Notes: generated by a model not told the origin, from the letters alone. Counted from the stretch's first letter, positions 20,137 through 26,922 are shown. The stretch: 57,258 nt of DNA from Ministeria vibrans ATCC 50519 (GCA_943704425.1 CALSCP010000519.1:36677-93934), one strand, 5' to 3'. A program made the numbers and translations.

Positions 20137-21054
20137 CTACTGCTTTTTGGAATGAGACGCAAGTTTTGTGCGGCGACGCAAGGAAGTCTTGTGCTTGACT
20201 CGAAAGTCGGACTTGAGCCAGGTGCGCTGCTCCTCCCAGGACCAGCCCCCAAAAGCGGCGCGCACGCCGTCGTCGCCCAGTGGCACTTGCTGGTAGGCAC
20301 ACAACCGACCGTCCAGTGAAATGCGGTTGGCGAGTGCCTCGGTGCGTGTGTGGAAGAAGAAGGTGGACGGAGCGTGCTTGGCAATGTCGGCTTCAGCGTC
20401 GTGGGTGTCGTCGCCGTAGCCGGTCTGCTGTTGGTCATCGTAGTAGGCGGCCGAGTCATCGTAATAGCCCTCTTGGTCGTAGTAGGCATCGGCATCATCC
20501 CCATAGGCATCGGCGTGGCCCTGCGTGTCGTCGTGAGCGGTGTCGCTCGCAGTGGGCAGCTTGAGCGAGAAGGACTCGGCGTTGGCGGGCGCCTCGAAGA
20601 GGGAGCGCAGACTCGAGTGTTCAGTGACAAAGCGAGACGATGCCGACAACTCCTTTTTGCTTTCAGTCGAGGAATCAGCAGAGGATGACGAGGAGGACGA
20701 AGACGACGAAGACGAAGACGACGACGAGGAAGAGGACGAAGACGAGGAGTCCGAGTCTGAGTCTGAGTCCGAGTCCGAGTCTGCGTCGGAATCAGTGCTG
20801 TCAGACTGACTCGTCTGTGTCGTCTTCGCGTTTTCCTTCGCACCACTCGGTGTGGAACTGTCCGCCTCATCTTCTTCGTCGCTGCTGCTCTCCTTATCTT
20901 CCCCACTGTTAGCGTCGCCGTCCTGCGCACTGTCGCCTTTGCCCTCGTCGTCCTCATCCCCACTGCTGCTCGAGTCACTTTCTGCACCACTCACGTCCAT
21001 CGGCGCTTGTCTGTCACTCGCATCGTCGCCACTTTCCTTGAGCTCCTTCTTCAC
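20137..21054 (-). CDS. 3' part of an acidic/Ser-rich protein, probably nucleolar protein 8-like; 5' end in gap
   Basis: Long S/D/E tracts. The C-terminus FFFH...WEEQRTWLKSDFRVKHKTSLRR resembles the NOL8 C-terminal motif as I recall it (FFF..W......L..D.R.KHK). Confidence 0.55.
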   Translation of the reverse strand: MKKELKESGDDASDRQAPMDVSGAESDSSSSGDEDDEGKGDSAQDGDANSGEDKESSSDEEDEADSSTPSGAKENAKTTQTSQSDSTDSDADSDSDSDSDSDSSSSSSSSSSSSSSSSSSSSSSSADSSTESKKELSASSRFVTEHSSLRSLFEAPANAESFSLKLPTASDTAHDDTQGHADAYGDDADAYYDQEGYYDDSAAYYDDQQQTGYGDDTHDAEADIAKHAPSTFFFHTRTEALANRISLDGRLCAYQQVPLGDDGVRAAFGGWSWEEQRTWLKSDFRVKHKTSLRRRTKLASHSKKQ

Positions 21055-22002
21055 NNNNNNNNNNNNNNNNNNNNNNNNNNNNNNNNNNNNNNNNNNNNNN
21101 NNNNNNNNNNNNNNNNNNNNNNNNNNNNNNNNNNNNNNNNNNNNNNNNNNNNNNNNNNNNNNNNNNNNNNNNNNNNNNNNNNNNNNNNNNNNNNNNNNNN
21201 NNNNNNNNNNNNNNNNNNNNNNNNNNNNNNNNNNNNNNNNNNNNNNNNNNNNNNNNNNNNNNNNNNNNNNNNNNNNNNNNNNNNNNNNNNNNNNNNNNNN
21301 NNNNNNNNNNNNNNNNNNNNNNNNNNNNNNNNNNNNNNNNNNNNNNNNNNNNNNNNNNNNNNNNNNNNNNNNNNNNNNNNNNNNNNNNNNNNNNNNNNNN
21401 NNNNNNNNNNNNNNNNNNNNNNNNNNNNNNNNNNNNNNNNNNNNNNNNNNNNNNNNNNNNNNNNNNNNNNNNNNNNNNNNNNNNNNNNNNNNNNNNNNNN
21501 NNNNNNNNNNNNNNNNNNNNNNNNNNNNNNNNNNNNNNNNNNNNNNNNNNNNNNNNNNNNNNNNNNNNNNNNNNNNNNNNNNNNNNNNNNNNNNNNNNNN
21601 NNNNNNNNNNNNNNNNNNNNNNNNNNNNNNNNNNNNNNNNNNNNNNNNNNNNNNNNNNNNNNNNNNNNNNNNNNNNNNNNNNNNNNNNNNNNNNNNNNNN
21701 NNNNNNNNNNNNNNNNNNNNNNNNNNNNNNNNNNNNNNNNNNNNNNNNNNNNNNNNNNNNNNNNNNNNNNNNNNNNNNNNNNNNNNNNNNNNNNNNNNNN
21801 NNNNNNNNNNNNNNNNNNNNNNNNNNNNNNNNNNNNNNNNNNNNNNNNNNNNNNNNNNNNNNNNNNNNNNNNNNNNNNNNNNNNNNNNNNNNNNNNNNNN
21901 NNNNNNNNNNNNNNNNNNNNNNNNNNNNNNNNNNNNNNNNNNNNNNNNNNNNNNNNNNNNNNNNNNNNNNNNNNNNNNNNNNNNNNNNNNNNNNNNNNNN
22001 NN
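21055..22002. other. Assembly gap
   Basis: Run of N. Confidence 1.
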
Positions 22003-22039: not shown

Positions 22040-25000
22040 CGATCCAAGAGCAGTGGAAGCTTGAACGGGGAGGCGAGACTGGAGAGCGGGGTGCCGACAT
22101 CGCCCTCGCCCGCGGCCGAGTCCGAGCCGGTACCGTCGTCGTCTCGTCTGAAGAGTATGTTGCGCTCGTTGGGGCGAAGTTTCACGTCGAACACTGACGA
22201 GACAATAATGGATGACACGGTGAATGCGGGCACACCTGCCGACGCTGCTACACGCGCCGTGAGTGCATCGCTTGAGTCCATTGGGCCGCTTGCGGGTGCC
22301 TCGCCGCCCCCGCCTCCGCCTCCGCCGCCACCGCCCTCGTCACGGTCCTTCCCGTCCATCCCACGATTCTTCCGTCGTGACAGTGATGACCTTGCTCTCG
22401 GTGACGCTACTCCTCTCGGAGCGTCGCTTGACGAACAACGTGCCGGTCCCCAACAGGTCTTTCGGTTTTTTGTGCCGTGGCGCAAACAGAACCGCCAGGG
22501 TGGCCAGGACACAATGGCGGGCGCCTCTTCGGATGACGACGTTCTGGTCGAGACTGACCAACGACGACCGCGCCGCAGCTGGCGACCGCGCCTGCCCCGC
22601 CTTGGCACACCCGGAGTTGTCGCAAGCTCACGTGGTGTGTCGGGGGTGAGCGACGATGAATCATTGCGACACCAACCACGACGCCGGAGTGAATCGGCGC
22701 CGCCACCGACTCTGTCTCATCCCATGAATGACGACGAGGACGATGCCGGCGACAGTCGTGCTTGCAACATGGTTGAAGATGGCATGAGCACTGACAATGG
22801 TGGTATTGGAGATGAAGAAGACGACGATGACGAAGGCGAGGAGGAGGAGGAGGAGGAAGACGATAATCACCGCCACGACGATGACGGTGACGAAGACACC
22901 GACGCAGGGATGTCTCCGCTTTCAAACCGTCGGCATATGGAGGGCAATTTATCGCGAACAGATAAAATCCGACGTTTGTCGCAGTCCATCGGACGCTCGC
23001 TTGGACGGCCCTCAGCACCGAAAGGTGGGTCGCTGACGGACGAGCGAATGACAGTGGGACCACCACCACGACGACACGGTCGTGGAACAGAGCGAGCTGC
23101 GAATGCAGGGCGCAGACGCGTGCGCGTGCCGACGGTGGCCATTGACGATGGAGACACGGCCGACGACGAGAACCCGTCGTCGGTGGGACTGTTGGACATG
23201 AGCACGCTGATGCAGGGTCTGCGCCGCATGAAGCCCTCCATGAAGCACGTCAAGGCCTACAAGAAGTATGCCGCGGCGCGTCTGCGCAACTTTGGACAGC
23301 GTGGTGCAGGCGACACTGATGCGGACACGACGGCTGGTGATGTGCCGGGCGGCGACGAGTCGGACCGGGAGACGGCTGCGAGTACAGCAACTACAACAGG
23401 CGTGGCGGATGTCGCTGGGCCATCCACGACGACAAACACCACAACGACCACGGCGACTGCGGCCACCATAGCGACTGTGACACCGCGCACGCGCTCGGCG
23501 CAGGTGGACAAAGGGCCACTGGCACGAATCCGACGACGCATGACCGCCGGGCGTCAGTCCGAGTCTGAGACTGAGACTATCGATGAAGCGGCAGTCTCGA
23601 TGGACTTTTGGGGCTCGAAGGAGGCCGACGAAGAGATTATGGACATTCGTGGGTACTTGGGTGAGTCGCATGTTGACGAGCAGGCCGCTGGCGATGTTGT
23701 GTCGCTCGTGCAGTCGTTGAGCAAAGCCGACGAGAACCGAATGGGGCTGTTGCACCACTCTGAGGACGGGCCTTTCTTTAGCGACGAAGAATTTGACGAC
23801 GATGATGAGGATGAGGATGATGATGAGGATGATGATGATGATGAGGAGGAGGATGACGACGAGGAGGAGGAAGAGAATGAGGAGGAGGAGGAGGAGGAGG
23901 AAGATGACGACGGCGAACTAGAGTTTGAAGTTGATGAAGAGGCGAAAGAGCACAACGCTGAGGGGGTGCGAGAGCATCACAAAGCCACAGCGGCTGCTAC
24001 CGCGTCTTCTACTACAACTACAGCTTTTCCCGAAAAGCGTGCAGGTGACTCGACAACTGGCTCGTCGATTGTGCCGTCAACGACAAGTGTTGCTGCTCAT
24101 TTGTTGTCGTCACGACAGCACAAGCAGGCGAGACGGAAAACGTCATCGCTGCAGAAGAATACGAAGAAAAAGGGTCGCCAGGTGCATGCCGGTGAAACCA
24201 TTCACGAGGAGGGTATGGGAGAGAACGAAGACGATGACAATGACGACGACGATGATGAAGGAGAGCACGGGAGACAGCGACACCACAATAGCATGGACGG
24301 TCGTCGTCTGGGCGACGACGATCTGCTGAGTTTTGTGGGGCACACGGGACACAGTAGTTTTGGGGTGAACAGCAGCATTACAGACTGGGCGTCACTGACG
24401 CGCGAGACTATGCCGCACATGCGTGTTCTGATTGCCACGGTGGGATCGCGTGGGGACATTCAGCCGTTTGTGGCGCTTGGACGGGGTCTTAAGGAGTTTG
24501 GACACGACGTGCGCATCGCCGGATTTGAGGTGTTTCGCTCGTTTGTCGAGCGCAACGGCCTTGAATTCTACCCTTTGGCGGGCGACCCACGCGAACTGAT
24601 GCAGTTGTGTGTGCAGAATGGAATGTGGTCGCCATCGTTTATTGTCGAGGCATTCACACGCTTTCGGCGGTTCTATCGCGACCTATTTCATTCGCTGTGG
24701 TCAGCGTGCACCGAGCCGGCCGCGGGCCACTCGTACTACTGCCCTCATGTTATCATCAGCAATCCGCCTGTGTTTGGACACTATCATGTGGCGCAGGCGC
24801 TGGACGTGCCGCTCATCATCAGCTTCACCATGCCTTGGTCCAAGACACGCGACTTCCCACATCCCATGGTTGCCGACCGGGGTTTTGGAAAGCGCGGCTC
24901 CAAGTACAATCGTCGCACCTACACGCTGCAGGAGAAGGTGGTCTTTCTCGGCATGATGGACGTCATCAACACCTGGCGCAAGGAGCAGCTCCGCCTGCCT

Positions 25001-26829
25001 CCCATCAGGTACGCTGGCACAACGCTCAGCGACACTCCAGAGATTGTCCTCATCACCGCTACTCTTCGTTTTTTTTTTTTTTTTTTTTTTTTTTTACGCG
25101 AGCCATCCATCTTTCTCATCATCATCCTTACGTTAGCTTCTACAAGGGCGCGCACTATTTGCGACTTGCTAAAGTGCCACACATTTACTGTTATTCGCGC
25201 AGTCTGCTTCCCAAGCCACACGACTGGCGTGAACACGTCAAGGTAGGTCGCTTGTTGCCGCGCCATCTCATGTGGCCATCTCATGTGCTGTGTGATGCAG
25301 AATACCCACCACGCAAGTGTTTATCACCAAAATTTCTGTTTTGCATAGGTGACGAATTTCTGGTTCTTGGACGAAGGGAGCAATGAAGAGTTTGTACCTG
25401 GGGCAGAGCTAGCGGCGTTTCTTGCGTGTGGGCCTCCACCGGTGTACATTGGGTTTGGATCGATTGTGGTGGAGCAACCGGAGAGTCTAACGCAGCTGAT
25501 TGTGTCTGCGGTGGAGGCGGCAGGTAAACGGGCGGTGGTGGCGCGGGGTTGGGGCGGCGTGGGCCAGCCAAACCAACCTGACTGTTGCGTGCACTTTTTG
25601 GACTTCTGCCCCCACGACTGGCTCTTCTCGCGCGTCGAAAGCGTCATTCACCACGGCGGTGCAGGCACCCTTGCCGCAGGCCTCCGTGCCGGCCGCCCCA
25701 CCGCCATTGTTGCCTTCTTTGGCGACCAGTTCTTCTGGGGTCCTCTTATTGAGAAAACCAAGGTAAAATTTGTCTATTGTTTTCTATTTCTCTTTGATCA
25801 CTTTCTTTTTGTTTCTATCTCATTTTTACTACTGCTTTGTTTCTCTGTCGCTCTTTGTTTTCTATCTCTCTCTATCACTTTGTTTCTTTCTCTCTCTCTT
25901 CGTTTGTTTCTTTGCTCTCTCTATCACTTTGTTTCTCTCTCTCTTTCTATCTCTCTCTCTTTCTATCGCTCTCTCTTTCTCTCTCGTTTTATCTCTTTGT
26001 TTTTGTTCCTCCTCTTATTGTCATTCCGTTTTACTTTGTTTACTGTCTTTCTCTGTTGCTGAGTCTATTTTTGCGTCTGCGTGTAGGTGGGCGTGTGGAC
26101 ATCGGTGAAGAAGCTGACGTTTCAGTGGCTGGTAGACACGCTGCAGTTTTTGTCGCTGCCGAGCACCCAGGAGAGTGCAACTGCTCTGGGTGCGGAAATC
26201 AACGCCATCAATGGCGTCGAGGAGGCCATTGATGCGTTCCACCAGTTTGTTCCGCCCGAGGTTCAACTTGAAACGTTTTATTTTACGATTGTAAATTAAT
26301 GGCGTAATCAACCTTTGCTTTGCAGATCACTCACTCGGTGGCGTACGAGCGACACTACGAGATGCAACGCAAGTATCCCTTGCGTGGCTGGGTCAAGGCG
26401 ACGCTGAACACTCAGAAGTATTGAATGACACACTGTGTGGCACTTTGAATGAGTACCTTGCTCATGTTGTTGTGTAGGACGGGTCTAACGAGTGTCTCGG
26501 GAGACGGAGACGCATTCACCATGCCTGCACGACATGGATGGCGCTGGGACGGAGATTGGATTGTGGACGACGCTGAGCCCGAGTGGGAACACTCCAAGGA
26601 CTGGCGACTGGAGTTTCATCGTGAGATGCGTATCACGGATCTTGTCCGTCGACGACGAATCAAGCGACGAGTAAGAAAGAATAATAATAATAATATTATT
26701 ATCGTATTTTCATGTTTGTTTGCTCTACAGCGGGTGCGGATTCGAGATGAAATTCTCTGGGCGGAGGAGTCCATGTCGACTGCTGCTTCGGATGATGGCG
26801 ACGTTGCCGAGAAGGTCACGACTGTGTAA
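22040..26829 (+). CDS. Sterol 3-beta-glucosyltransferase-family enzyme (UGT80/Atg26-like) with long disordered acidic N-terminus and C-terminal DysF domain; 5' end may lie in gap
   Basis: RVLIATVGSRGDIQPFVALG..GHDVRIA, IISNPPVFGHYHVAQAL, FTMPWSKTRDFPHP, PPPVYIGFGSIV, PHDWLF..HHGGAGT..FFGDQFFWG. Last exons at 26326-26417, 26478-26670 and 26731-26829. Confidence 0.92.
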
Positions 26830-26922
26830 ATAAATTGAAATCTAATCTGAAACACAACAAGTCAACATAAATAATTATGAATAATAATAATAATAGAATA
26901 GATTTTTTTCCACTCTGTGACT

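Follow-up and report, generated by a model that had tools for sequence, protein, structure and literature searches.

Sterol glucosyltransferases of the fungal Atg26 type carry domains that target them to membranes, and a gene of Ministeria vibrans ATCC 50519 raises the question of whether a DysF (dysferlin/peroxin-type) domain can take over that role. The gene lies on the plus strand of a 57,258-nucleotide stretch of DNA (CALSCP010000519.1:36677-93934; the window, by which we mean this stretch at its full length), which is a piece of contig C519 in a 29.7-Mb eukaryotic assembly with short GT-AG introns. An earlier reading of the sequence (the original prediction) had proposed that a sterol or lipid glucosyltransferase (GT) is fused here to a C-terminal DysF domain, and had ranked the locus as the best candidate for a new system in the window. 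Our analysis favours, with a probability of about 0.7, the reading that the gene encodes a holozoan counterpart of Atg26 whose membrane-targeting module is a C-terminal DysF domain in place of PH/GRAM.

The enzymatic part is encoded by the first four of seven exons. The exon-1 translation matched PF03033 (Glyco_transf_28) with 65.9 bits, and the best matches of the GT N-lobe in the PDB were the yeast UGT51/Atg26 structures 5xvm/5gl5 (E 3e-37). The C-lobe in exon 3 likewise gave UGT51 as its best PDB match (E 1.3e-27), with PF06722 and PF00201 sub-threshold on this exon alone. The catalytic and uridine diphosphate (UDP)-sugar motifs GSRGDIQPF, HHGGAGT and FFGDQFFWG are intact. By these matches the core is a complete GT1 enzyme of the GT-B fold and of the UGT51/Atg26/UGT80 sterol 3-beta-glucosyltransferase type, for which we infer UDP-glucose as donor and a sterol as acceptor by homology. 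In a six-frame scan of the whole assembly PF03033 was found at one locus only, the window gene, which is therefore the organism's single enzyme of this type.

The C-terminal tail and its relatives

We searched 1.84 billion (1.84e9) representative proteins by phmmer with the 64 residues of exon 6 as the query. The six matches were the window's own open reading frame (ORF), P0122 and four proteins with the DysF signature, namely P0123 (E 2.1e-5), P0124 (E 1.1e-4), P0125 (E 5.6e-4) and P0126 (E 8.3e-4). Three of these four (P0123, P0125 and P0126) exceed the cut-off of the Pfam model PF06398, with 38.9 to 57.3 bits over profile positions ~245-358; P0123 has a Pex30-like layout, and P0126 also bears Tectonin and Hyd_WA repeats, as in TECPR1. 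The second match, P0122 (E 1.9e-9), has FG-GAP/PASTA repeats and aligns with the beginning of exon 6, which is rich in Gly and Asp; it was rejected as a composition artefact. A hidden Markov model (HMM) was made from four DysF instances, in the selection of which exon 5 had no part. Exon 5 matched positions 7-29 of this model with 13.8 bits and exon 6 matched positions 45-101 with 48.4 bits; both lie on one strand, in the order of the DysF consensus (YENQR..P..GW in the N-half, GWxWxxxW..GWxY..VRRRRWxR in the C-half). An HMM of the orthologue tails described below scored exon 5 at 10.7 bits (positions 7-30). As a control, the window was cut in its six frames into 1,433 stop-to-stop pieces, and each piece was scored with two independent DysF HMMs. 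With both, the exon-6 piece ranked first (49.0 and 15.7 bits) and the exon-5 piece second (14.3 and 11.0 bits), while every other piece stayed at or below 6.1 bits, so that the DysF match is beyond chance.

The residues that characterize the domain could also be located. In an alignment of exon 6 to residues 50-105 of the TECPR1 DysF structure 8p5p (E 0.9), the positions of W-x-W-x3-W, GW and VRRR(R/K) agree, and the stacking Trp and Arg residues of TECPR1 (W116, W118, W122, W138 and the Arg run), whose role has been described (PMC10476172), have counterparts in exon 6. In a 12-sequence alignment, W21, W23, W27, R58 and R63 of exon 6 are invariant and W36 is present in 90% or more of the sequences. 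ESM features point to PF06398 clusters, which we take as a lead only.

A search with the GT N-lobe yielded 587 homologues. The closest three, 55-60% identical, are P0001 from Salpingoeca urceolata, P0003 from S. punica and P0002 from Chromosphaera perkinsii, and in all of them the GT core is followed by a tail rich in Trp and Arg. For P0001 as for P0003 the complete ORF lies on one Trinity transcript, hence GT and tail are co-transcribed in both Salpingoeca species; P0002 is a gene model. In tblastn each of the three proteins matched the window exons one after another in the right order, exons 5 and 6 included. The HMM of known DysF domains gave 51.1 bits (full length) on the tail of P0002, 36.3 bits on P0001 and 26.6 bits on P0003, compared with at most 5 bits on the ~145 other GT homologues that were fetched and scored. 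In the reverse direction, an HMM built from the three orthologue tails recovered DysF proteins (54.8, 35.7, 26.6 and 18.4 bits) together with window exons 5 and 6, and nothing else. Aligning the profile of the three GT-DysF proteins to a DysF profile with hhalign gave 95.2% and an E-value of 2.8e-8 over 101 columns, placed on the tail. Against PDB sequences the three-protein profile found UGT51 (E 3e-116) and other GT1 enzymes. Below E 0.8 the sole non-GT matches fell on the tail, to dysferlin (4cah) at E 0.09 and to myoferlin (2k2o) at E 0.25.

Judged by these comparisons, the tail is a full DysF domain, and the DysF signature read there by the original prediction is borne out by phmmer matches to Pfam-verified DysF proteins, by the two collinear HMM halves and by hhalign. 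The proposed joining of the tail to the GT likewise held, given the single ORFs of the nearest homologues, two of them on Trinity transcripts, and their exon-by-exon collinearity with the window. We regard the GT-DysF architecture as very probably real, and on the available sequences the layout is common to at least four holozoans, i.e., two choanoflagellates, one ichthyosporean and the window organism. A second search across the C-lobe and tail produced no further fusions, and a word-based homologue search with the P0002 tail returned only that tail itself. Well-known holozoans were not among the top matches of the GT N-lobe, no search having been aimed at them. A 52-row MAFFT alignment including P0002 misaligned the tail and placed the DysF proteins elsewhere, and was not used. 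Full-text searches found no paper linking a DysF or dysferlin domain with a glucosyltransferase, a sterol glucosyltransferase or Atg26, in agreement with the suggestion that such a fusion is undescribed; a full-text search combining sterol glucosyltransferase and choanoflagellate found nothing relevant. To speak of a new system was nevertheless an overstatement, and a new domain architecture of a known enzyme describes the finding better.

The place of the fusion within the family was examined in a quick maximum-likelihood tree of the N-lobe only (the window exon-1 piece and 54 homologues, 217 columns). The four DysF-bearing enzymes form one group with a Shimodaira-Hasegawa-like approximate likelihood ratio test (SH-aLRT) value of 99. 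The adjoining group (SH-aLRT 95) consists of fungal-type enzymes with N-terminal GRAM and PH domains (P0131, P0135 and P0142), and the PH-bearing P0012 comes next. This branching suggests that the fusion arose once and that the DysF-bearing enzymes correspond to Atg26 in holozoans. Among other relatives, those of stramenopiles carry PH domains, metagenomic sequences a B-box or SAM domain and plant enzymes no addition. Exchange of accessory modules is thus common in the family, on which DysF had not been seen before. The contrast already drawn with PH/GRAM-bearing fungal Atg26 and domain-less plant UGT80 is visible in this domain content. A different C-terminal extension of ~300 aa, with G-x-x-G / KP-x-x-G amphipathic repeats and no Pfam match, was seen in P0004 and P0140 (bdelloid rotifers) and in P0150 (Gonapodya). 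A Gly-rich repeat region of similar appearance precedes the two DysF domains of P0125.

Proposed membrane targeting and its alternatives

In the mechanism that we propose, the core would transfer glucose from UDP-glucose to a membrane sterol, and the finger of the DysF domain would recruit the enzyme to the membrane, in the role played by the N-terminal GRAM/PH of fungal Atg26. The domain may recognise one lipid in particular or a certain state of the membrane, in the way that the DysF of Pex30 binds phosphatidic acid and that of TECPR1 sphingomyelin. The C-terminal helix of GT-B enzymes folds back onto the N-lobe, where the acceptor is held. The DysF domain begins about ten residues after the last GT helix, and with the helix returning to the N-lobe and so short a linker it would sit on the membrane-facing side of the enzyme. 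Both DysF domains with known ligands bind lipids via the finger tip (PMC10476172, PMC12101077, PMC12101078). Taken on its own, we consider the lipid-targeting mechanism of the tail slightly favoured over its absence.

Several observations weigh against our reading. The Pfam Pex24p model (PF06398), to which the original prediction had pointed as a HMMER check, gives exon 6 alone only 10.4 bits (cut-off 26.8, E 0.33, positions 295-358), where exon 6 holds half of the DysF domain and the model describes a whole 358-position peroxin. The orthologues are also sub-threshold with this model, P0001 scoring 15.4 bits and P0002 and P0003 having no match. The window has Ile in place of the Trp that is usual after the Arg run, and in the central loop it lacks the Trp of WSD. 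In the alignment to 8p5p, TECPR1 W154 and K152 correspond to Ile and Met, and no lipid specificity can therefore be assigned. A DysF fold has two long antiparallel strands with a long loop around them; an AlphaFold2 model of exon 6 alone (12-row alignment) had a mean predicted local distance difference test (pLDDT) score of 43.9 and no strands. Among the relatives, the S. urceolata transcript lacks the last DysF strand, its sequence having turned to Cys-rich nonsense ahead of it, and no N-terminal DysF half can be recognised in the S. punica tail. The tree was quick, is limited to its 217 columns and came with long-branch warnings; the window gene model combines genomic DNA with homologues, its evidence being assembled exon by exon; and the sterol acceptor is assigned by homology only. 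Finally, we know of no established lipid ligand for a ferlin DysF domain, and the window DysF could for this reason be a protein-binding or regulatory module.

Such a module, acting by autoinhibition or by docking to a ferlin, a peroxin or an autophagy factor and not as a membrane anchor, is in our judgement unlikely. Other mammalian DysF domains lack the sphingomyelin binding of TECPR1, and the tip residues are poorly conserved (PMC10476172), W154 being among those replaced in the window; the short linker would let the domain pack on the enzyme, and a ferlin that has a DysF itself is encoded in the genome as well. The balance is tipped the other way by the lipid binding of both DysF domains with a demonstrated ligand (PMC10476172, PMC12101077, PMC12101078), by the repeated occurrence of the lipid-binding targeting domains GRAM and PH on relatives of the enzyme, and by the predicted substrate, itself a membrane lipid.

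We think it very unlikely that the fusion is illusory in the window, i.e., that the transferase ends shortly after exon 4 and that exons 5-7 represent a small gene of their own, a 3' end that is alternative or goes unused, or a decaying remnant. A stop lies 13 codons into the read-through after exon 4, which makes a short isoform possible, and public gene callers recorded just the intron-retaining 121-aa ORF P0121. The orthologues, however, join GT and tail in one ORF that is collinear with the window exons, in two cases on an assembled transcript. Splice sites and phases fit exactly, and the exon-5 piece, 65 nt from exon 4, has no start codon of its own and no space for a promoter; the domain itself is intact, with all stacking Trp and Arg residues present. 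That the tail is a Trp/Arg-rich low-complexity stretch resembling DysF by chance is scarcely credible: the single-sequence matches to PF06398 and the PDB are not significant alone (E 0.33 and 0.9) and the AlphaFold model of exon 6 is unstructured, but phmmer E-values down to 2e-5 among 1.84e9 proteins, the agreement of reciprocal HMMs, the hhalign E-value of 2.8e-8, the right order of the two halves on separate exons, with exon 5 unused in choosing the DysF set, and a six-frame control with nothing else above 6.1 bits all speak against it.

Within the membrane-targeting reading, it is tempting to speculate that the DysF domain senses a lipid that is exposed to the cytosol only on a stressed or damaged membrane, or that marks a certain contact site, and brings sterol glucosylation there. 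This damage-sensor idea is unsupported, and we consider it quite improbable. If it were true, a dysferlin-type sensor would be tied to bilayer chemistry in unicellular relatives of animals, in an enzyme-based pathway of membrane repair or organelle turnover that animals would have lost together with the enzyme. The function of DysF domains is poorly understood, although dysferlin disease mutations fall in them, and to our knowledge a ligand has been identified for only two of them, the DysF of TECPR1 (sphingomyelin) and that of Pex30 (phosphatidic acid). A DysF domain joined directly to a membrane-lipid enzyme, in lineages close to animals, would offer a simple system for asking what DysF recognises, with the place and time of sterol glucoside synthesis as a built-in readout. 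Should no more than the architecture stand, the finding adds modestly to the known domain combinations.

Gene structure, N-terminal arm and surroundings

Exon borders were re-derived from the frames backed by homologues (tblastn with P0001-P0003) and are collected in Table 1. Counted from the ATG at 22157, the first in frame, the coding sequence comprises 3,930 nt, i.e., 1,309 aa. The six introns (128, 106, 324, 65, 60 and 60 nt) are all GT..AG with consistent phases. At the 5' end the open frame extends back to 22061, where a stop directly precedes it, and exon 1 runs to the donor at 25009. An assembly gap (N run, 21051-22000) lies directly upstream of the gene, which leaves its true 5' end, start and promoter uncertain. 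The three tail exons translate exactly as originally predicted, and the three junctions proposed for them were recovered as GT..AG introns of 65, 60 and 60 nt in phases 0, 2 and 0. The gene model upstream of the tail had to be corrected, both at the end of exon 1 and in exons 2-4, to the borders given in the table.

Table 1. Features of the sterol glucosyltransferase-type gene, in positions of the window
Feature	Position	Strand	Content	Basis
Exon 1, part 1	22157..24424	+	acidic N-terminal arm, ~756 aa, without recognised domain	
Exon 1, part 2	24425..25008	+	GT-B N-lobe (Glyco_transf_28), GSRGDIQPF motif; end phase 2	
Exon 2	25137..25242	+	linker between GT lobes (..FYKGAHYL..HIYCYSRSLLPKPHDW..)	ordered tblastn with P0001-P0003; splice and phase check
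Exon 3	25349..25762	+	GT-B C-lobe, UDP-sugar motif (PHDWLF..HHGGAGT..FFGDQFFWG)	UGT51 match, E 1.3e-27
Exon 4	26087..26260	+	C-terminal helices of GT core	tblastn with P0001-P0003, E 2e-7 to 8e-6
Exon 5	26326..26417	+	short linker and N-terminal half of DysF (YEMQRKYPLRGW, YENQR..P..GW motif)	
Exon 6	26478..26670	+	DysF loop and C-terminal half (HGWRWDGDW..EWEH..DLVRRRRIKRR), stacking Trp/Arg residues	
Exon 7	26731..26829	+	end of last DysF strand (RVRIRDE), acidic C-terminal tail, TAA stop 26827-26829	translation; phase-0 junction
AATAAA hexamer	26829..26834	+	overlaps stop codon; likely the polyadenylation signal at the gene's end (candidate)	read directly from sequence

Exon 5 translates as ITHSVAYERHYEMQRKYPLRGWVKATLNTQ with 2 bases left over, to which the first base of exon 6 is added to complete the codon before TGLTS..ARHGWRWDGDWIVDDAEPEWEHSKDWRLEFHREMRITDLVRRRRIKRR; exon 7 reads RVRIRDEILW...TTV and then stops. 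Unspliced read-through would meet stops after exon 4 (26297-26299) and after exon 5 (26422-24). The last intron (26671-26730, 60 nt) is in frame without a stop, and its retention would add 20 residues (VRKNNNNNIIIVFSCLFALQ) to the last DysF strand; the 121-aa ORF P0121, recorded by public gene callers from a 691-nt ENA contig, is exactly this intron-retaining form. Intron 3 (25763-26086, 324 nt) is nearly all a CT-rich, microsatellite-like tract, and intron 1 contains a run of roughly 36 T (25060-25100).

The N-terminal arm is acidic, with 22% D+E and 17% S+T. Pfam searches of the 982-aa exon-1 translation gave no PH or GRAM domain at E up to 1, and no domain at all across its first ~790 residues. 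No transmembrane-like segment was found, as no 19-aa stretch reached a Kyte-Doolittle value of 1.6 and the maximum of 1.53 fell within the GT core. At 23770-23800, within a very acidic tract of the arm, lies ..DGPFFSDEEFDDDDEDE.., with a Ser at position 4. Given this Ser, DGPFFSDEEFDDDDEDE looks more like a phospho-FFAT than an FFAT motif; if it is one, its combination with DysF would point to an enzyme of contact sites. A second, N-terminal DysF in the window gene was considered because of a weak tblastn match (22406-22585) and a motif in S. urceolata, and was rejected, as neither HMM supports it. The motif in question, a short DysF-C-like stretch (GWAWLDGW ... VRRRKWVRD) at residues ~100-140 of P0001, scores 5.5 bits with the tail HMM and has no counterpart in the N-terminal arm of the window.

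Downstream, the next gene starts near 26920 and is protein kinase C (PKC)-like. Between 26923 and 29200 it shows C1-domain motifs (phorbol-ester/diacylglycerol type) typical of an animal-like novel PKC, which fits a holozoan origin of the genome.

Comparison with known systems

The closest known system is fungal Atg26/UGT51 (CAZy GT1; PDB 5GL5, 5XVM), which has the same catalytic core with the GSRGD, HHGGAGT and FFGDQ motifs and is likewise a soluble enzyme that needs recruitment to the membrane. Where fungal Atg26 has N-terminal GRAM/PH domains, the window enzyme has its ~756-aa acidic arm and a C-terminal DysF instead, i.e., a targeting module of a different fold at the opposite end of the protein. 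This suggests that Atg26-type enzymes took different targeting modules in the two opisthokont branches, GRAM/PH at the front in fungi and DysF at the back in holozoans. Plant UGT80A2/B1 belong to the same GT1 family and share its motifs (P0108 and P0139), but lack an additional lipid-binding domain and stand farther off in the sampled tree.

The N-terminal DysF of TECPR1 (PDB 8P5P) belongs to the same domain family as the window tail, and the TECPR1-like P0126 was a significant phmmer match. In TECPR1 the DysF sits on an E3-like adaptor and acts as a sphingomyelin sensor of damaged endomembranes, for which the tip residues K152, K153 and W154 are needed (PMC10476172). The window DysF sits on an enzyme, in a protein without tectonin repeats, PH domain or ATG5-binding region; Pfam found no Tectonin or Hyd_WA match in the gene. 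We considered a transfer of the sphingomyelin specificity of TECPR1 to the window domain and rejected it, since the essential W154 (PMC10476172) is not conserved.

The Pex23/Pex30 peroxins share with the window protein a single, non-nested, C-terminal DysF; the best phmmer match (P0123) has this layout, and the matching Pfam model is that of the peroxins. The DysF of Pex30 binds phosphatidic acid (PMC12101077, PMC12101078). Unlike these peroxins, which are membrane-shaping tethers, the window protein is an enzyme and has no membrane-spanning reticulon-homology region.

Ferlins (dysferlin and myoferlin; PDB 4CAH, 2K2O) are related through the same domain family and through weak profile matches on the tail. 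Their inner and outer DysF domains are nested, whereas the window gene has a single one that is not, and no C2, FerA, FerB or transmembrane anchor was found in it. A true ferlin with FerB, nested DysF and C2 domains is encoded elsewhere in the same genome (L001, G000:C583:31523-34807, a 1,531-aa open frame), and the organism thus has at least two kinds of DysF protein.

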